DNA of 64,000 bases from sequence record KX397373.1. One strand, given 5' to 3'. Of the stretch, positions 10,694 to 40,359 are shown piece by piece. Position numbers and translations under genes: made by a program. The notes beneath the pieces were generated by a model. The model was not told the DNA's origin. It saw only the letters and a list, made by a program, of their open reading frames with translations, and made no database searches. Numbering within the stretch: position 1 is the first letter of the stretch; every line of letters starts with the position of its first letter.

Positions 10694-11090
10694 CTTCGAA
10701 GAACTGATGGCACGGGCGCACCTCGCGAATGAAAACGAGGTGGAGCCCGCTATCGCTTATTTATTTCTGACGAAGTACGCGGAAGAAACCGTGCGGTCTA
10801 TCGCAAAGCGGGCAGGGGAAGGCGAGAACTTTCTGACATTCATCTCACCGGAACCACACCTTATTGTGACTCAGTTAGCCCAGATGTGGGGTCGCGAAAA
10901 GGTTGTCCCACTATTGATGTCGCACATGTCGTGGAAGATCAACGAAGATGTTCAATTCACCCGTATCCTTAATACTGTGGAGCGGTTGTGGAAAGAAGTT
11001 GGTCTTCCGCGAGACGAAGCGGCCAAACGCACGAAGGTTTCTCTCCTTATGAAAGAGATCGGTAGTGCAACCATTTGCGTAGAGTGTTAA
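10659..11090 (+). CDS. hypothetical protein
   Basis: Overlapping operon ORF. Confidence 0.75.
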   Translation: MKLYLDVAEIFDFEELMARAHLANENEVEPAIAYLFLTKYAEETVRSIAKRAGEGENFLTFISPEPHLIVTQLAQMWGREKVVPLLMSHMSWKINEDVQFTRILNTVERLWKEVGLPRDEAAKRTKVSLLMKEIGSATICVEC

Positions 11091-11099
11091 GGGGCGAAG

Positions 11100-11693
11100 A
11101 TGTTATATAGGGTGAGAGCTAACCACCTTATTTGCGTCGACTTAGGTGTGCTGGGTTATGTGAACGATGGGGAGTGGTTCTTGCAGATGGTGATTAACTA
11201 CATCCGCACCATTCCCCGTTTACACATCGAGCTGGGGGAAAGTCCGAACGAGCAAAGTATCGTGACTGCGGTTGAATGGGCGTTGTTGTCGTACACCCGT
11301 GAGCTGCGTTTCCCCGGTACCCGTTCAGAGTTCCATCAGCTGAACCAATACCTAAAGACGTTGAATGATGAATACCGTCGCTGGAAGTTCGACGAGTGTA
11401 TGGAGTCGCAAGTGGGGTCAGTTGCTTTTGATGACTTGCGTCCGCTCCTGACTATCGTGGAACAGTGCCGTATTCTGGGTGAATCGTCGTGGGACATCCT
11501 GCGGACATATGCCAATGACTTGATGCTTGAGGTTATCCTTTCGGCAATCAAGGAACATTTCGCTGCACCGATGGACATGTTTATGACCGTCCACAAAGAG
11601 AAAGTCAAGGGCTTTGACCTGTACGTCCATTTTCCTACGGATGCCACGTCAGCGCTTGATTTGAAACTGTTGGTAGATATTCCGGAGGAGTGA
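11100..11693 (+). CDS. hypothetical protein
   Basis: AAGGGG RBS with ATG start. Confidence 0.75.
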   Translation: MLYRVRANHLICVDLGVLGYVNDGEWFLQMVINYIRTIPRLHIELGESPNEQSIVTAVEWALLSYTRELRFPGTRSEFHQLNQYLKTLNDEYRRWKFDECMESQVGSVAFDDLRPLLTIVEQCRILGESSWDILRTYANDLMLEVILSAIKEHFAAPMDMFMTVHKEKVKGFDLYVHFPTDATSALDLKLLVDIPEE

Positions 11694-12103
11694 TGTTCAA
11701 CGTTAAGTCGATTGAGCCAGGGAGTGTGGTAAACATTGTTTACGATACCCCTTTAAAAGGTAACGAAACCCGCGTGCTGGTCTTGGCCTCCAACGTGGGA
11801 TTCGAAATGGCCAAGTCGTATCTGGATGTGCGCGCTGAGCAGAAGAACATTTATTCTTCTCTGGTCGCGCAACCTGACGACGACCCAACCAAATACACCT
11901 ACCTGCTGTTCAAAGGTGCTGATGGTAAACCGAATGTAGCGGCGGATGCGTGGATTCGCAACGTGGCAATCATCGATACCATCTCAGTACAGTTCAAAGT
12001 GACCCTGGATAACAAACAGGAAATCGATGACCTGAAACTGGCACTGGCAGCGCGCGGCTTCAATGATGTGCAGTTTGAAATCATTGAAAACGTAGCAGGT
12101 TAA
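11690..12103 (+). CDS. hypothetical protein
   Basis: GGAGG RBS, coupled start, terminator downstream. Confidence 0.8.
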   Translation: MMFNVKSIEPGSVVNIVYDTPLKGNETRVLVLASNVGFEMAKSYLDVRAEQKNIYSSLVAQPDDDPTKYTYLLFKGADGKPNVAADAWIRNVAIIDTISVQFKVTLDNKQEIDDLKLALAARGFNDVQFEIIENVAG

Positions 12104-12109
12104 GATAGA

Positions 12110-12146
12110 CCCACTCTTCGGAGTGGGCTTTCTTTTTTTCTTTTTT
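12110..12146 (+). terminator. intrinsic terminator
   Basis: CCCACTC-TTCG-GAGTGGG followed by a T tract. Confidence 0.85.
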
Positions 12147-12194
12147 CACGTATCTGACCTGTCTTATAGCTGAGAATACACCAAGGGGCCAGAC

Positions 12195-14480
12195 GTGGAA
12201 TACCAATCACCATTTCGTCTTACTGAAGACGAATACCACCGTGACATCGACATTATCGATGCGTACTACGAACAGTTGGCCTTATACATCCACACCGTGA
12301 CCGCCGGTAAATACTCGCTGGAGTTTTGCCGTGAGCAAGTCGAAGACATGTTCAAACCAGGCGGGGAGTTAGTACAAGACTTCCCGGTCTGTAAGATGTG
12401 GGTGCGTAACCAAAAGACCGGTGACCGTGAAGAGAAGTACACCACGGTTGACCGTCTGTTCCGTACAGTAATTGATAAACAGATTATCTCGGCCCCGTCA
12501 TTAACCTTTTACGTGCCCGAGCATGTCAAGCGTTCGAAGCTTGCGGAGTTTACCGCAGAGAACGTGCGTAAGCGTGCTGTGGTGAAAAAAGAAATGTACG
12601 TGGCCGCCGCTGCGGGTAACGAAGTCTTAAAGATCAACAAAAAGAACGAACAAAACGCCGTTAAGACTTTGAACAACGGAATGTCAGGAGCCTTCTCCTC
12701 GCCGTATACCGTTATCTTTAACCAGTCGTCGCACTCCGTGTTGACGTCAACGTGCCGTACGGCGACCTCGTTTGGTAACGCCGGTAACGAACGTCTGTTG
12801 GGTGGTCGTCGTCACTACGACACACCATCTCGCGTACTCGACCATTTCCTGTCTATCGGTACCCTTACCGACTGGCAGGGATTCAAAGCGTGCATGGACA
12901 AATACAACCTGCACTATCCGTCGGTCGACGAAGTTATGGAAGTGGTGGAGCACTCTTCGAAAGATTACTTCATCAACCCAGAAGGTCTGGCGTTTATTCG
13001 TCAGTACGCCACTAACACGACCGCACTTACGCGTGCAGCATTTGTGTACATGGGCGACTTCTATCACCTGGCGAAGTACAACGATCAATTCATGCGTGGA
13101 TTTATTGGTGCACTGATTGCCGAAGAGATGGAAGAAGAAATCACCGATTGGGATGCCGCTGAGAAATCGATTGACGGGGACATGGAGATTATTATCTCTC
13201 AGTTCCGTACCGACATCGTACCGCTCGGTAAGTCTTTCTCGGATGTGAAGCTGAAAGATGAAGACACCAACAAAGCTGAGCCGTGGGAGAAGCAGGACAA
13301 ATACAAAGAGCTGATTCGCTCTGCGGTGTACCTGCAAAAGACCATTGGCCACTATGCGTGTTTGATTCGCAATGTGCTGACCACCAAGAACCTGCCAATC
13401 AACATTGCCAGGATGCCTGACGTGGTGCGTAGCGTCGGCGTAGTATCGGACACCGACTCCACGATGATGACTGCGCAGTGGTGGGCACAGTGGTACACCG
13501 GACAACACTACGGACGTGAGGCAACCCGCGTTTCTGATGCGATGATTTACCTGGCAACCCAACACTTGCGCCATTTGATGGCGAGTATGTCAGTAAACAT
13601 CGGTGTAGCAAAAGAGCGTCTGTTCCTGTACGCAATGAAGAACGAGTACAAGTTCGACTCCTTTGCCCTGACCACCAAAGCCAAGCATTACTTCTCCATT
13701 ATTACCGGACAGGAAGGCCAGCTGAAGAAAGACCCAGAGCTAGAAGTGAAGGGGGTTTCTCTGCGTACGTCGAACATTCCACCGGTTATCATGAAAGAGT
13801 TCAAGCGTACCATCAAACAACTCTGTGAGATTGTTGCACGCGGCGACAAAATCGAAATCATTCCTCTGCTGGAGAAGGTCGCAGGGATCGAGCACACCGT
13901 GGCGAATTCTATCCGCAGCGGTAATGCCGGTTACTTGAAAACCACCAACATCAAGGAACGTACCGCGTATAACGAGAACGACGAGAAGAACTACCACTAC
14001 CACCGTTTCTACAACGAAGTGTTCGGGCCGAAGTTCGGTCATATCGGTGAACCTCCGTACGACGGTGTGAAGTTGCCGGTTAGCTTGCAGACTAAAACCG
14101 CGGTTAAAGAGTGGTTAGAGTCCATTAAAGATCCGATGATTAAAGCCTCCGCAACTCAGTGGTTTGAATCAACCAACTTCCGTACTTACCGTACGCTGAT
14201 TCTGCCAGAACACCTGGTAGAGAACTACGGGATTCCACAGGAGCTGATTGACATCGCGGATATTCGTCGTACTGCATTTGCCACGGTTGAACCGTACTAC
14301 CACATCCTGGAATGTCTGGGTGTGTTCATGATGGACAAGAACCGCACTCGACTGCTGTCGGATTACTACGGCGAATCGCTGGATGCGGAACTGGCCGAAG
14401 CCTTAGCCGAGGTCACGTATGTTCGTAACGATGAGCGTGAAGACGAGGATGAAGATGAAGAAGAAGGCGGTGAGGAATAA
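12195..14480 (+). CDS. family-B DNA polymerase, polymerase half (phiKZ gp50-like)
   Basis: Motif B KTLNNGMSG, motif C SDTDS, K..Y and KG motifs; acidic C-terminal tail. Confidence 0.9.
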   Translation: MEYQSPFRLTEDEYHRDIDIIDAYYEQLALYIHTVTAGKYSLEFCREQVEDMFKPGGELVQDFPVCKMWVRNQKTGDREEKYTTVDRLFRTVIDKQIISAPSLTFYVPEHVKRSKLAEFTAENVRKRAVVKKEMYVAAAAGNEVLKINKKNEQNAVKTLNNGMSGAFSSPYTVIFNQSSHSVLTSTCRTATSFGNAGNERLLGGRRHYDTPSRVLDHFLSIGTLTDWQGFKACMDKYNLHYPSVDEVMEVVEHSSKDYFINPEGLAFIRQYATNTTALTRAAFVYMGDFYHLAKYNDQFMRGFIGALIAEEMEEEITDWDAAEKSIDGDMEIIISQFRTDIVPLGKSFSDVKLKDEDTNKAEPWEKQDKYKELIRSAVYLQKTIGHYACLIRNVLTTKNLPINIARMPDVVRSVGVVSDTDSTMMTAQWWAQWYTGQHYGREATRVSDAMIYLATQHLRHLMASMSVNIGVAKERLFLYAMKNEYKFDSFALTTKAKHYFSIITGQEGQLKKDPELEVKGVSLRTSNIPPVIMKEFKRTIKQLCEIVARGDKIEIIPLLEKVAGIEHTVANSIRSGNAGYLKTTNIKERTAYNENDEKNYHYHRFYNEVFGPKFGHIGEPPYDGVKLPVSLQTKTAVKEWLESIKDPMIKASATQWFESTNFRTYRTLILPEHLVENYGIPQELIDIADIRRTAFATVEPYYHILECLGVFMMDKNRTRLLSDYYGESLDAELAEALAEVTYVRNDEREDEDEDEEEGGEE

Positions 14481-20742: not shown

Positions 20743-20773
20743 GAAAGAAGGGGCTTCGGCCTCTTCTTTTTTT
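20743..20773 (+). terminator. intrinsic terminator
   Basis: AAGAAGGGGC-TTCG-GCCTCTTCTT followed by a T run. Confidence 0.8.
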
Positions 20774-34326: not shown

Positions 34327-36033
34327 ATGGTCGAGATTCACATGACTTACACGAGTATGGGGGTCAGGGTAGAAGTCCCCAACCGACAGATGGAGTCGGC
34401 TATACTCGCGTGGGCCGAAGAGAATATGCACGCCCCCAAGATGGGCAAGCAACAAGGACGTATCACTACCGAAAGGGGGGATGCGTTTTATGTACACATT
34501 CCTTCCCTGCGCACATTTATCTTTCACCGTATGTTTGCTGACCGTATTCAGGCGCTGATCCAACGGGCGTCTTTAGAATACGGTGTTCGTTACAACCTGT
34601 ATCAGCATCAGGTTGACCGTAGCGAGCCGTATCGTTGCACGTTTGACAATCCCGGCTTTGCCATGATGGAAACAGACGAGTCTTCTCGTTTCTTCTACCA
34701 GAACGAAGTTGTGGATGCTGCTTGTCAGCCAGATCGCCAACAAACCATCTTTGCCATTCAGACTGGTCGCGGAAAAACCAAAACCTGTATGAAAGTCATG
34801 GTAAAGAAAGGGGTACGCACACTGCTGATTCACCGACCCACGTATGTGTCCAAGTGGCTGTTTGACACCACAGAAGACCCTACAGGGCTGCGTGAAGATA
34901 AGGAAGGGGTATGGGTGGTGACGGGCGTACAGGCCGTCTACGAGGTGCTGGAGATGGGAGAAAACGGGGAACTCGACCGCCGGGGGATTAAGATTATTAT
35001 TATCCCGACTGTGACCCTGCAACGCTTCCTGAAAGAGTACATCAACACCGCGGCAACTAACCCCGTGAACCTTGACCGGTTCTACGACACGTTGGGCGTC
35101 GGTCTGTTGGCCATGGATGAAGTGCATGAGCATTTCCATCTGGTTTATCAGGCAGGGATTATGTTGAATCCCCCACCGAGTGTGGAGATGTCAGCCACAC
35201 TGAAACCGGGTGCCAGCAAAGCGTTTATTGCTGAGCGGTATCTGGAACGTTTCCCGCCGGATTTGCGTATCTCGATCCCGGTCATTCCCGTGGTGCATAT
35301 CCGTGCACTGTATTACGCCATTGAAGATCGTAAGTTTGCGTTCTGGGCCGGGAAGATGACCCCGTACAACCACAAACTGTTCGAAGGGAAACTCATTAAA
35401 GAGAATCTCCACATCAGTTATGCGGAAATGTACTGGGACATGATAGAGAAAACCTACCTGAAAGAGTATCAGGTGGGGCAGAAAATCTTGTGTATCTTTG
35501 CGACAGTGGCGATGTGCGAATTCTTTACAGAGTTTGTGAAGGACAAGCTTGCACAATCAGAGCAGTTCCATGCACTGATGGTGTCGAAGTTTAATGCGGG
35601 CGATTCGTATGACGACTTCATCTTAGCAGACATCTCTATCTCCACACCGGGGAAAGCAGGTACTGCGGTTGATAAGCCGGGGTTGGTACACATGTACATC
35701 TCGACCCCGGTTGAAGACCAACAGCTCAACGAGCAGATGGCCGGTCGTCCACGTAAAATCATGCACAAGGATTGGGGCGAAATCGATCCGAAGGTGTGGT
35801 TGTTCCATTCGCACAACATACCGAAGCATTGCAACTATCTGAACTCGCGCCAGAAGTCACTGACCGATGTCGTGTTGTCCTTTAAGATTGCAACGTCTCC
35901 GTACGTCGTAAGGAAATCCAATGCTCACTCCGCCGCTTCCGCCCGCGCCAATGCCGCCTTATGTCGGGCTGACCTTAGCAAGTTTACTCGAAACCGCTTT
36001 AAAAGCGTATCCCGGCGTAGAAGACGTCGCTAA
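34327..36033 (+). CDS. SF2 helicase (phiKZ gp75-like)
   Basis: Walker A QTGRGKT, DEVH, SAT and QMAGRPR. Confidence 0.9.
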   Translation: MVEIHMTYTSMGVRVEVPNRQMESAILAWAEENMHAPKMGKQQGRITTERGDAFYVHIPSLRTFIFHRMFADRIQALIQRASLEYGVRYNLYQHQVDRSEPYRCTFDNPGFAMMETDESSRFFYQNEVVDAACQPDRQQTIFAIQTGRGKTKTCMKVMVKKGVRTLLIHRPTYVSKWLFDTTEDPTGLREDKEGVWVVTGVQAVYEVLEMGENGELDRRGIKIIIIPTVTLQRFLKEYINTAATNPVNLDRFYDTLGVGLLAMDEVHEHFHLVYQAGIMLNPPPSVEMSATLKPGASKAFIAERYLERFPPDLRISIPVIPVVHIRALYYAIEDRKFAFWAGKMTPYNHKLFEGKLIKENLHISYAEMYWDMIEKTYLKEYQVGQKILCIFATVAMCEFFTEFVKDKLAQSEQFHALMVSKFNAGDSYDDFILADISISTPGKAGTAVDKPGLVHMYISTPVEDQQLNEQMAGRPRKIMHKDWGEIDPKVWLFHSHNIPKHCNYLNSRQKSLTDVVLSFKIATSPYVVRKSNAHSAASARANAALCRADLSKFTRNRFKSVSRRRRRR

Positions 36034-36363: not shown

Positions 36364-36951
36364 ATGAGTCGTGCCAAAAAGTCCAACGGTTTTAACCCTC
36401 GCCAGAACGCGCGTGACTATATCCGCAACGCGATGCAGGGTATTCTCAGCATCAGTCTGATGTTTGAAGAAGAAACCAAAATCCTGTCACAGAAAATCGA
36501 CCGTGAGCGTGAAGTGTCATCCACGATCGGTTACGAACCGCTGCGTATCTTTACGCTGGAAAAACTGGATGAAGCCCAGGCTGGTTTCATCGGGTTAATG
36601 AAAGAAGGCAAAGAGAAACTCGATGCCCTCAATATTGAAGCTGACGCCACGGCGGTCGAGCTGCAAACCCTGGTGAACGAGAATCGCTGGGACACCATTA
36701 AAGACACCTACCCGGCGATGGAAATGGCCCTGGCTGCACACGCCACTGATGCCCACATCATCGGCCAACAGATTCAAGGTGCGGCCATTGAGATCCTGTC
36801 TCTGTATAATGGCCGTGTCAACTTCGTGAAGCAAGCTCTGAAAAGAGACATCGACTGGGACGTAGCACTGAAGATGCTGGCAGAAGCCGAAGCAGATCAG
36901 GCGAAGCCGGTTGAAGAAGCTGAAACCGTTGAGGAAGCTGCACATGTCTGA
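36364..36951 (+). CDS. hypothetical helical protein
   Basis: AAGGA RBS before ATG at 36364 (MSRAKK). Confidence 0.8.
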   Translation: MSRAKKSNGFNPRQNARDYIRNAMQGILSISLMFEEETKILSQKIDREREVSSTIGYEPLRIFTLEKLDEAQAGFIGLMKEGKEKLDALNIEADATAVELQTLVNENRWDTIKDTYPAMEMALAAHATDAHIIGQQIQGAAIEILSLYNGRVNFVKQALKRDIDWDVALKMLAEAEADQAKPVEEAETVEEAAHV

Positions 36952-39004
36952 ACCGTTAGATCAGCGCCCGTCCAACGTGCGCCGTCCCAATCTTAACCAG
37001 CCTGAGGTGTCGCAAGACACCCAGGAACTGGTGCTGCCACCGGCTGCGCAAATCCAGACCATGGATAGCGAAGACGCGGTGATGTTGATTAAGAAATCCA
37101 ACCCTGGTTTTTCTTTTGCCCGTGCTGAGCAAGTGTACAACGAACACTACCCTGTTCAGCCGCTGCAAGTCGAAGAACCGGTGCTGCAACGCCCGGTGTA
37201 TCAGCAGGAAGAACCCCCTGCCCCACCGGTTGCTCCTGCGGTAGCGCCGGAAACACTAAAGGTGCCGGAGGAAACCGCCCACGTTACCCAGCCCGCTGGC
37301 CCGGACACAACGATCTTCGTTGAGCCAAAACCAGAGCCGAAGGTAACGCATCAGCATGTTCACCAATCTGCGCCTGCGCAGAAAGAAACGACAGTGGACG
37401 ATAAACCATTCACTCCGGCTTCACCTGAAAAACAGGTACAGCACGCTGACCACGAAAAGAACGCTGCGCCGCAGGTGCGTCCGGGCGACAGCGAACGTCA
37501 GGTGAACTTCGGTAAAGGTGTGTATCAACCCGAAACGGCTGAGCTGCCCGAAGACGACCGTGATGCGGTACTGACTGGCCTGCGTCGTTTGGTTGGCCCG
37601 ATGCAAGACCCGAACTTAATCGGGAAAGACTTGCAGCGTTTCTTCTCCAGTGTGAAACGTTCCCCGGAAGACGGCCGTCTGTTGTTTGAAAGTGAAGAAC
37701 AGCAAAACCGCTACGGTCTTATCTACGCGGCGCTGAACATGACCCCGCCGACACTGCACAGTGGCGTGCAGGCGTTTGACCAGGCGTTAGAGCGTGCAGA
37801 TACCCCGTGGGAACAGCGTGTACTGCTGCCGGGTTTTGATAAGCCTGCTGGGTTAATCTCCCCGCGCAACAACATGCACACTGGCCCGATTGCTGCCCTG
37901 CGCCGTCGTCGCAAGACCGGTATTCCTAACTCGGTCTGGTTACCGGCTACCGGTATCTACGTCGGCTTCAAAGCACCGAACGAACGTGAGTTCTGTGATT
38001 TCGATATGCAGCTGACGCTGGAAACGGCCACCATCGGGATGCAGACGTACGGCCTGATGCTGTCGTCCTCGTCCGGTGTCTATATCCGCCACATGGTTGA
38101 GTTCGCCCTGCAATTCGTTACCGAGTGTACGCTCGACTGCGAAGGCAACGACATGAAGACCGTGCTGCTGGATAAGATTGACCTGGCTGACTACTGGCTG
38201 GTTATTCTGGGCCCAATCCAGGCGAAGTTCCCGGCCGGGTTACCGTGGACACTGATTTGTGGTCGTGACGGTTGCGAACACGAAGAAAGTGTGAAGCTGA
38301 ACATCGCCCGTTGTATCCGTATGGGTACCGGTCTGTACACCGACCTGCAACGTAACCTGTGGGCGCATCAGCGTGGTACCGATGACTTCCTGATCAGTCA
38401 GGCAGAACAAGCGGAGTTCGTGAACAACCACCTGAAAGACCCGGCTGCTGTCTTTGAAAAAGATGGCGTGACCGTGACCTTCGGTCGTTGTTCTATCGGC
38501 GAGTTCTTCGACCACACCGAAAGCTGGATGGCGGACATCAATGCCTCAACCACCACAGCATTGTCGGCCAACGGTACGGAGCGTGAGAAAGAGAACCATA
38601 TGCGCCTCACCGCAGAGACCCGTCGTCTGACCCGTTATGCCCACATGGTGGAATCTATCTCCGTGGTGGAAGAACAGGAAGTTGACGGTGAGCTCGTGCA
38701 GACCACGCAGACGGAACGTGACTACAAGAAGATTGTCGTGATGCTCGAAGAGTTATCACCTGACCGTCTGTATGTCAGTCAGTTCGAAGAAGCGATGGCG
38801 CTGTATAATGAGCGCTCACGTCTGGCCGTCTTCGGCTACATGGGACAGAAATGTTCTGTGTGCGGTGGCGACCATGACGGTGAGAAAGAAGGTCTGTACC
38901 GTGGTATCGTTACCATTTCTCCGGACAGGGTTTTTTTCGAGCTCTCTCGAGTGGTGTCCGAGATTCAGAAGTTTCTGCTCAGACAATACGGCGTTACTGG
39001 CTAG
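36944..39004 (+). CDS. probable tail/baseplate assembly chaperone (T4 gp26/gp51-like C-terminal part)
   Basis: Pro/Gln/Glu-rich N-terminus, two Cys clusters (CGRDGC and CSVC), ends ..DRVFF over a slippery site. Confidence 0.65.
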   Translation: MSEPLDQRPSNVRRPNLNQPEVSQDTQELVLPPAAQIQTMDSEDAVMLIKKSNPGFSFARAEQVYNEHYPVQPLQVEEPVLQRPVYQQEEPPAPPVAPAVAPETLKVPEETAHVTQPAGPDTTIFVEPKPEPKVTHQHVHQSAPAQKETTVDDKPFTPASPEKQVQHADHEKNAAPQVRPGDSERQVNFGKGVYQPETAELPEDDRDAVLTGLRRLVGPMQDPNLIGKDLQRFFSSVKRSPEDGRLLFESEEQQNRYGLIYAALNMTPPTLHSGVQAFDQALERADTPWEQRVLLPGFDKPAGLISPRNNMHTGPIAALRRRRKTGIPNSVWLPATGIYVGFKAPNEREFCDFDMQLTLETATIGMQTYGLMLSSSSGVYIRHMVEFALQFVTECTLDCEGNDMKTVLLDKIDLADYWLVILGPIQAKFPAGLPWTLICGRDGCEHEESVKLNIARCIRMGTGLYTDLQRNLWAHQRGTDDFLISQAEQAEFVNNHLKDPAAVFEKDGVTVTFGRCSIGEFFDHTESWMADINASTTTALSANGTEREKENHMRLTAETRRLTRYAHMVESISVVEEQEVDGELVQTTQTERDYKKIVVMLEELSPDRLYVSQFEEAMALYNERSRLAVFGYMGQKCSVCGGDHDGEKEGLYRGIVTISPDRVFFELSRVVSEIQKFLLRQYGVTG
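38932..38963 (+). promoter_or_regulatory. candidate -1 ribosomal frameshift signal
   Basis: In-frame T_TTT_TTC (38932-38), overlapped by G_GTT_TTT; 5-bp stem 38945-49/38959-63 after a 6-nt spacer. Confidence 0.7.
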
Positions 39005-39426
39005 ACCACGACGAAGTACCATCCGACCAGATAATCACGACCCTCAAGTTGGATACCACCTCACTGTTCAAGCAGCGTAGTACCCGACCGATTACGTATC
39101 AGGAAGCCCACAACGAGTTGATGGAAGCTTACGATGCAACACTCGGCCTGGATACAGGTGAGAACCATATCGGGTTGTCAGAGTTTGAGAACCCGGTAAC
39201 CGGTAGTCTGTACGAAATCTGGTATGCCACGTACCTGCGTGAGCAAATTGGTGAACACTTTCGTCTTTCGTTCGATGAGTTCTTAGACCGTCCTCGCTGG
39301 CAAATTATGATCATGCTGGAGGCGGTCAGGCGTCGCATGGCTATCCTCAACAAGGATATTCAGGCACAGCTTGAAGAGAACAAAGAGATGCGCGAATTGG
39401 AGAAAGAAAACAAGGGTCGTTCTTAA
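38938..39426 (+). CDS. -1 frame extension of the chaperone (track ORF 39049..39426)
   Basis: Frame is open from 38884; the track start is a TTG without an RBS. Confidence 0.65.
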   Translation, partial: RALSSGVRDSEVSAQTIRRYWLDHDEVPSDQIITTLKLDTTSLFKQRSTRPITYQEAHNELMEAYDATLGLDTGENHIGLSEFENPVTGSLYEIWYATYLREQIGEHFRLSFDEFLDRPRWQIMIMLEAVRRRMAILNKDIQAQLEENKEMRELEKENKGRS

Positions 39427-39458
39427 GGGGCTTCGGCCCCTTTTCCTTTTCTTTTTTT
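39427..39458 (+). terminator. intrinsic terminator
   Basis: GGGGC-TTCG-GCCCC followed by a T-rich tract. Confidence 0.85.
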
Positions 39459-39495
39459 GCCTTGGTATGAATCCCCAAAGTGCTGGAAACCTCCC

Positions 39496-40359
39496 ATGAT
39501 TGACATTTATACCGACTACGCGGCCGTACTGACGGTCAATCGCCATGAAGACCGTGCAGCGCCGATGCTAGACTTAGTGACCCTCGGTATCGATTACGGT
39601 TATGATGTGGCTTTAAGCGACGTGTATTTTGAACCGTCTTCTGACCCGGCGGATGAGACCATCCGGTTAGAAGGTATTATCGTGAAGTGTGCAGTCGCGC
39701 TCGGCAACCGCCTGGGCGTCGCCCTTAATCCACAAATCGTGTATCATAAACCCAAAGAGACCGTGCGTATCTTACACGGACTGCTGGAAAAGTTTGAAGA
39801 CTTCGACGACAGCGATAGCCTGTACGGCATCGTGATGTCTGGCGAAACCCCTGAGCACATTCTTGAGAACATGTGCCGTGTTGTGTACGGTGACAACAAC
39901 CTGCACTTCGAAGACCTCGTTATTTCAGTCGGCCCACGGGTGATGACCGTGATGCGTAACTACCTGGCGGCAGCAGCGCTGGAAGAACAGAAGGGTGACA
40001 ACGATTACCTGCGTATCGGCCGTATCGCGGCGTATCTGCGTACCTTCCCCCAAAACCCGTCAGCGTTTGTGTTCCTGAACCTGCCGCAAGAACCGGACAT
40101 GCTTGTGGTACAACAAGCGTTGTCGTTTGCGGACGACGAGTACAGCGACGATGAGTTACTGTTAATGTACGCGGTCGGGTTATCCGTGATTCCGTTCGAT
40201 GACTTCGACGGGGCCTACGGTGCGCTGGCCGGGAACCTAGAAAAGATTAACACCGACAACTACCCTCCTCTGCCGATTCTGGAACAGGGGTTGGTTGCCC
40301 TGAAAACCATCTACGGGCAAGACCGTGCGCAAGAGGAAGAGAATTATGAACAGGATTGA
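39496..40359 (+). CDS. conserved hypothetical protein
   Basis: Acidic ORF of about 287 aa immediately before the vRNAP subunit. Confidence 0.8.
   Translation: MIDIYTDYAAVLTVNRHEDRAAPMLDLVTLGIDYGYDVALSDVYFEPSSDPADETIRLEGIIVKCAVALGNRLGVALNPQIVYHKPKETVRILHGLLEKFEDFDDSDSLYGIVMSGETPEHILENMCRVVYGDNNLHFEDLVISVGPRVMTVMRNYLAAAALEEQKGDNDYLRIGRIAAYLRTFPQNPSAFVFLNLPQEPDMLVVQQALSFADDEYSDDELLLMYAVGLSVIPFDDFDGAYGALAGNLEKINTDNYPPLPILEQGLVALKTIYGQDRAQEEENYEQD

Follow-up and report, generated by a model that had tools for sequence, protein, structure and literature searches.

We analyzed a 64,000-nucleotide (nt) stretch of DNA from sequence record KX397373.1 (the window). Its positions 36900-39500 match those of Erwinia phage vB_EamM_Stratton (KX397373.1) with 100% identity and without any offset in coordinates. 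We found that two neighboring genes in this region, STRATTON_54 and STRATTON_55, are probably one gene that is decoded in two ways through a -1 ribosomal frameshift on a run of T's. Both are annotated in GenBank as 'hypothetical protein'. By sequence similarity, STRATTON_54 is a homolog of Chimalliviridae core gene cg18, which is one of ~68 genes common to all nucleus-forming phages and is itself without an assigned function. The features at the site, in window coordinates, are:

36944-39004, + strand: STRATTON_54, the 0-frame open reading frame (ORF), encoding a short form of 686 amino acids (aa); homolog of Chimalliviridae core gene cg18 (phiKZ gp077, RAY gp267).
38931-38938, + strand: T7C run; U_UUU_UUC at 38932-38938 is a slippery heptamer in phase, which we propose as a recoding signal in an intact gene.
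38884-39426, + strand: open stretch in the -1 frame, which includes the annotated STRATTON_55 (39049-39426).
38939-39004, + strand: dual-coding overlap of the 0 and -1 frames, with the lowest nucleotide diversity of the region.

STRATTON_54 runs from an ATG at 36944 to a stop at 39002-39004 (686 codons). Its codons at the site are AGG GTT TTT TTC, placing U_UUU_UUC in the phase for -1 tandem slippage, and 21 sense codons separate the heptamer from the stop. The part of the -1 frame that would be read after a shift extends from 38938 to 39423 (162 codons) and ends at a stop at 39424-39426. The earliest ATG, GTG or TTG in this frame is the TTG at 39049, which is without a Shine-Dalgarno (SD)-like motif, and no terminator was seen between STRATTON_54 and STRATTON_55. 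An earlier note on this DNA, made from the letters alone, had described the 686-aa gene, the position of the heptamer, a -1 frame open from 38884 to 39426, a downstream ORF with no proper start, and an 827-aa fusion. We confirmed these coordinates, and the arithmetic of the product lengths was correct.

In the mechanism that we propose, most ribosomes would stay in the 0 frame as far as the stop at 39004, giving the 686-aa short form with a short helix at its end. The remaining fraction would slip one base back while tRNA-Phe occupies the TTT and TTC codons of the T7C run, re-pair on the U's, and continue in the -1 frame to 39426. The last 21 residues would then be swapped for a 162-residue, mostly helical extension, for a total of 827 aa. 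We infer that the slip is ribosomal and that both products are made and needed, and we likewise infer their ratio.

We found that the site and both reading frames are conserved among close relatives. The close set consisted of 11 SPN3US-like phages (Erskinevirus, Seoulvirus, Machinavirus, Wellingtonvirus, and Derbicusvirus), the large proteins of which are 41-100% identical. All of them (11/11) had an unchanged T7C run, located in phase exactly 72 nt upstream of the 0-frame stop, and the codon preceding the run was variable (GTT or CTT). The -1 frame opened 18-141 nt before the heptamer and was open for 151-163 codons, and its translation was conserved starting at the first codon past the run. 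The 0-frame stop was also retained (11/11), and the -1-frame codon that overlaps it varies.

The pattern of nucleotide diversity in these phages was that of coding sequence in both frames. Past the 0-frame stop, in the 44 nt that lead up to the annotated start of the small ORF, diversity was 0.34, 0.23, and 0.62 at -1-frame codon positions 1, 2, and 3, respectively. For comparison, the body of the small ORF had values of 0.30, 0.17, and 0.59. The 44 nt upstream of the annotated start therefore vary as coding sequence in the -1 frame. Third-position diversity in the 0 frame dropped from 0.55 to 0.31 within the overlap (65 nt analyzed), as dual coding would predict.

We found that the same arrangement extends far beyond the SPN3US-like phages. 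A search of translated nucleotide sequence (tblastn) with the large protein identified homologs in phiKZ (PHIKZ077) and RAY (gp267) and in jumbo phages of Ralstonia, Burkholderia, Xanthomonas, Vibrio, and Bacillus. The Stratton protein and cg18 members share phrog_4585 and phrog_8054. phiKZ gp077, Goslar gp081, and RAY gp267 are listed together as Chimalliviridae core gene cg18, 'hypothetical protein' (Prichard et al. 2023 supplement). Our distant set had 13 members: phiKZ gp077, RAY gp267, a 201phi2-1-like contig, SA002, SNUABM_48, PhiEaH1, RsoM3USA, SURPRISE13, Bacillus phage AgentSmith, Halocynthia phage JM-2012, and three uncultivated contigs. In these 13 genomes the -1 frame stays open for another 151-171 codons past the run. 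In several of them its opening is a mere 2-14 nt ahead of the run, which places the shift at the run itself.

In an 11-sequence alignment (A3, F476), the site's second Phe did not vary, and a T6-T8 run lies over the Phe-Phe column in 24 of 25 genomes, 8-44 codons before the 0-frame stop. The lone exception, pVa-21, has T5. Two uncultivated contigs have T6 only, with the -1 arrangement unchanged. The heptamer was U_UUU_UUC/U/A in 22/25 genomes and G_UUU_UUU in 2/25, and pVa-21 has U_UUU only; an in-phase U followed by UUU was found in all (25/25), the T5 and T6 cases included. The first Phe codon was TTT in 25/25 genes, though most of them use TTC more often than TTT for Phe (in the SURPRISE13 gene, 2 TTT versus 17 TTC). 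The -1 register was kept in every genome in which it could be read (24/24). Alignment of homologs for the heptamer and the -1 phase was a check that the earlier note had proposed, and the result bears out its prediction.

The extensions encoded in the -1 frame are related to one another, with cross-hits among phrog_7580, 12109, and 13274. A search with an extension profile against 1.8 billion representative proteins returned 78 relatives, nearly all of which are stand-alone ORFs of 66-186 aa. None of the 78 was a fused protein of ~700-800 aa, indicating that the split is the rule. None of 24 inspected GenBank records (0/24) carried an annotation joining the two ORFs by slippage. Three bacterial surface proteins of 2400-3800 aa with immunoglobulin-like and NHL repeats (P0083, P0094, and P0097) also matched the extension profile, in several stretches, with E-values of 1e-6 to 1e-8. 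We treated these matches as spurious; they are probably a repeat or compositional artifact.

Taking these comparisons together, we lean, with some reserve, toward a broader interpretation: that the recoding has been fixed through the history of the nucleus-forming jumbo phages and their nearest relatives, that it gives two isoforms of the early-expressed core protein cg18 at a site without a classical stimulatory structure, and that the small gene annotated in ~150 genomes is not a separate protein. The short form would keep its C-terminal helix and the long form would have a module of 150-170 residues in its place. If the site works in this way, the ratio of the isoforms could depend on the state of the host ribosome or tRNA-Phe pool, which these phages are known to manipulate. 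In the searchable literature, which covered few subscription journals, no report of a frameshift in phiKZ, SPN3US, Chimalliviridae, or jumbo phages turned up, and the cg18 frameshift appears never to have been annotated before in phiKZ-like phages.

We also examined the other T runs in the window. Runs of at least seven T's are ~seven-fold over-represented on the + strand (14 observed, ~2 expected; examples begin at 20767, 29542, 34307, 39452, 42208, 57881, and 61682). Only the run in STRATTON_54 lies inside a long ORF. As the sole such run of 14 within a long ORF, and one that is conserved in relatives, the site is more than a chance occurrence. The 13 runs outside long ORFs are often preceded by a C-rich motif or a GC hairpin and are probably intrinsic terminators of the phage. 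One such structure lies directly downstream of STRATTON_55:

39425-39458, + strand: terminator-like GC hairpin with a T-rich tail, directly 3' of the stop of the -1 ORF.

Several results weigh against a ribosomal frameshift at the site. The 72 nt past the Stratton heptamer fold no better than shuffled sequences (z = +0.42). Downstream folds in 15 genomes had z-scores of -1.9 to +1.1, with no stable or covarying structure, and no consistent upstream SD-like element was seen. The homopolymer run is also the substrate that transcriptional slippage requires, and the phages use their own RNA polymerases. In the record of Xanthomonas phage RTH11, the gene body is in the third phase relative to the run; this discrepancy could be a homopolymer sequencing error or heterogeneity in run length. 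Finally, the trans-frame protein is a prediction from the sequence.

The earlier note had described a stem 6 nt downstream of the heptamer. A hairpin does exist there, and it is weak:

38945-38963, + strand: weak 5-bp hairpin, 6 nt past the heptamer, ~-4 kcal/mol.

This stem had no covariation, was broken in 2/11 of the close relatives, and was not conserved in the distant clades. The only structure returned by RNAalifold was a non-covarying helix that encloses the site and pairs segments before and after the run. We rejected this helix as a stimulator, as it lacks covariation and would be unwound by a ribosome on the site. There was no Rfam match at the site. A downstream hairpin or pseudoknot, or an upstream SD-like element, is common in -1 frameshift sites but is not obligatory.

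The strongest alternative is transcriptional slippage, which we consider possible but unlikely. Here, phage or host RNA polymerase would stutter on the T run, and minority mRNAs of altered run length, with the two frames in register, would encode the long form. The homopolymer of up to 8 T's as the conserved element, the failure to find a stimulatory RNA structure, and the different register of the RTH11 record are all as this explanation would have them; the exclusion of other runs of at least seven T's from coding sequence in the window fits a hazard at either level. However, the two contigs with T6 and pVa-21 with T5 keep the -1 arrangement, and runs of T5-T6 are short for efficient stuttering by bacterial RNA polymerases. 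Furthermore, the universal feature is the in-phase U_UUU, which is a ribosomal requirement, although this is not decisive because the phase is inseparable from the conserved Phe-Phe. Known sites of transcriptional slippage (Thermus dnaX, some insertion sequence (IS) elements, and viral P-gene editing) likewise have a homopolymer run where two frames join. Unlike those sites, the cg18 runs are down to 5-6 in some lineages and are always in the phase for tRNA re-pairing.

It is very improbable that STRATTON_54 and STRATTON_55 are two separate genes, with the small ORF translated alone from a non-canonical or poorly conserved start or by re-initiation past the upstream stop. Every database annotation does treat the small ORF as a separate gene, and SPN3US has an ATG at the position of the Stratton TTG. 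We found, however, no conserved start codon for the small ORF among the 11 SPN3US-like phages, as the earlier note had anticipated for homologous downstream ORFs. The first ATG, GTG, or TTG in the -1 frame of these phages lies anywhere from +42 to +210 of the heptamer, and in ChrisDB, Caitlin, and SNUABM_11 it lies past an invariant protein block. The starts given in GenBank vary by genome, and some are placed after invariant residues. Coding-type conservation of the -1 frame is found upstream of every candidate start and across the upstream stop. In phiKZ and AgentSmith, ~255 nt (~85 open codons) past the run have no start codon in the -1 frame. Retention of the -1 register in all 24 readable genomes also argues against separate genes.

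We analyzed the protein for evidence of what the two forms might do. The 0-frame product has two parts:

36944-37510, + strand: N-terminal region of ~189 residues, rich in Pro, Gln, and Glu and variable in length; absent from distant homologs.
37511-39001, + strand: conserved body (497 residues), which contains two pairs of Cys, all four invariant or nearly so.

The length of the N-terminal ~190 residues varies among SPN3US-like phages, and the region is missing from phiKZ, RAY, and other distant homologs, in which matches start near residue 200-300 of the Stratton protein. It is probably a disordered, clade-specific extension. An AlphaFold2 model of residues 190-686 was confident (predicted local distance difference test (pLDDT) score of 86, predicted template modeling score of 0.86). 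In this model, the 0-frame tail past Phe-Phe is a helix; this helix would be missing from the long form. The model of the -1-frame extension was poor (pLDDT 58, too low for a fold search); it was helical, and the helix at the C-terminus was long. The probable role of the extension is to equip a subset of the molecules with a module for interaction or oligomerization.

Database searches did not assign a function to either piece. There was no match to either in sequence searches of Pfam, NCBIfam, and the PDB, six distant homologs of the Stratton protein likewise had no Pfam hit, and PHROG matches were only to families of unknown function. A fold search of the PDB with the model of the body returned nothing (best E-value 0.16); as modeled, the cg18 fold is absent from the PDB. 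A fold search of BFVD returned strong matches to jumbo-phage homologs. Entries labeled 'baseplate hub' or 'hub assembly' were weak in that search (ranks 20-22 and 26, E-values of 3e-3 to 0.13, template modeling (TM) scores of 0.29-0.52 by target and 0.17-0.33 by query). These entries make a role in hub assembly a weak lead. The text of the paper on the Goslar virion structure makes no mention of the Goslar homolog (gp081), an absence that is neutral with respect to a role in assembly. We rejected an identity with PicA/Imp1 (phiKZ gp69), as the phiKZ homolog of the Stratton protein is PHIKZ077.

The earlier note had proposed that the two products are a G/GT-type pair of tail assembly chaperones. 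Conservation strongly supports the recoding; the chaperone function is unsupported, and we regard it as highly doubtful. A frameshift is reportedly conserved in the tail assembly chaperones of tailed phages, lambda G/GT among them (Levin et al. 1993; Xu, Hendrix and Duda 2004). As in lambda, cg18 would have two products with a common N-terminal part, short and long, through -1 slippage at a heptamer that lies near the 3' end, only a few codons ahead of the upstream stop; and, as in the chaperones, the arrangement is kept across very divergent phages even without sequence similarity. Some annotators label the homologs 'putative baseplate hub assembly protein', and the weak fold matches described above were to T4-like 'baseplate hub (assembly)' proteins. 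In contrast to lambda G/GT, the cg18 gene lies among helicase and RNA polymerase subunit genes rather than between tube and tape measure, as the earlier note had itself remarked of its distance from those genes. The upstream ORF has 530-700 codons (versus ~100-150 in the chaperones); the Stratton protein, at 686 aa, exceeds a G-type chaperone five-fold in size, and the slippery motif in cg18 consists of U's. Searches of Pfam, the PDB, and PHROG gave no connection to chaperone families, no sequence or fold relation to G/GT was found, and the lone 'tail assembly chaperone' entry in the BFVD search had an E-value of 0.73. The Cys clusters, terminal FF, and helical extension with a W that had suggested a chaperone are not a defining pattern of that family.

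Among named families, only T4 gp26/gp51 (PF12322) bears any structural resemblance to the cg18 body, and the gp26/gp51 pattern invoked by the earlier note comes down to this weak echo in fold. T4 gp26 and gp51 both match PF12322 (1e-52 to 1e-64) and are therefore paralogs; they are not a frameshift pair. The two genes are adjacent and divergently transcribed (T4 10803-12229), and gene 26 has an annotated internal product, 26'. Gene 26 thus also has two products, but the second comes from an internal in-frame start and not from a frameshift. Unlike cg18, gp26 and gp51 are 208 and 249 aa, and no hidden Markov model or profile match was found between them and cg18 (hhalign probabilities of 0.4% and 9.8%, not significant). 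In Churi, a close relative of phiKZ, the phiKZ gp077 homolog (gp256) was among the early-expressed proteins by proteomics (PMC11849849); early timing, if it holds for Stratton, would also differ from that of a G/GT-type pair, which is expressed late with the tail genes. The chaperone interpretation fails on position, size, and family, and probably on timing.

An error of sequencing or assembly at the homopolymer, or a decaying gene, can be set aside almost entirely: homopolymers are error-prone and there are two fused database entries, but no fewer than 24 genomes, sequenced by many laboratories and on many platforms, have the split, with runs of 5 to 8 T's in one register, and the phages are viable isolates in which this is a family-wide core gene. 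Because the run, the register, and the coding are conserved among related genomes, chance or error is very unlikely as the cause of the arrangement. The fused entries are a SEGD1 coding sequence and a metagenomic protein (P0073). The SEGD1 sequence is fused by two small indels (net +1), with the run unchanged and the conserved upstream motif garbled. In P0073, the first 193 residues match the gene body, ~33 are unmatched, and the last 80 match the extension from residue one; the run is unchanged and the stretch upstream of it no longer aligns with the gene body. Since the run is intact in both and the sequence upstream is disturbed, these fusions are likelier to be errors than are the split genes. 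All three departing records (SEGD1, RTH11, and P0073) look more like sequence errors than natural fusions.

The frameshift that we propose can be compared with the classical bacterial -1 frameshifts, IS3-family OrfA/OrfAB and E. coli dnaX (tau/gamma). Those systems share with the mechanism proposed for cg18 a bacterial translation machinery and tandem slippage on an X_XXY_YYZ heptamer, and in IS3 OrfAB the shifted product also acquires a whole extra domain. At the IS3 and dnaX sites, slippage is aided by a hairpin or pseudoknot located downstream and, in many cases, by an SD-like element located upstream; neither is evident in cg18. In addition, the shifted product is shorter in dnaX, whereas in cg18 it would be longer.

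If the frameshift is real, then every phiKZ-like genome would need to be re-annotated, with a single recoded gene in place of two 'hypothetical proteins' and with the extension added to the core gene set. Proteomic, localization, and transposon sequencing (Tn-seq) data on both ORFs would need to be read again. For studies of cg18, the two isoforms, the defined position of the switch, and the structural model would be a concrete handle. The site would also add a conserved phage frameshift outside the paradigms of tail chaperones and transposases, one that apparently lacks a strong RNA stimulator.

The neighbors of STRATTON_54 and STRATTON_55 are a helicase gene, genes annotated as RNA polymerase subunits, and hypothetical genes, and SPN3US, phiKZ, and RAY have the same synteny. 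Asesino, which belongs to the same genus as Stratton (Erskinevirus), has been shown experimentally to form a phage nucleus (PMC11724907). The start of STRATTON_54 in GenBank is a TTG (36911), which creates an overlap with gp53; the ATG at 36944, which gives the 686 aa used here, is favored by the phiEaH2 orthologue and by most relatives. Nearby, the 3' end of the helicase gene STRATTON_51 overlaps STRATTON_52 by 122 nt (window 35912-36033). STRATTON_52 is in the +1 frame relative to the helicase gene and has its own ATG near where that frame opens, and the overlap and both translations are kept in SPN3US and Asesino. STRATTON_51 and STRATTON_52 look like a true overlapping gene pair rather than a case of recoding.

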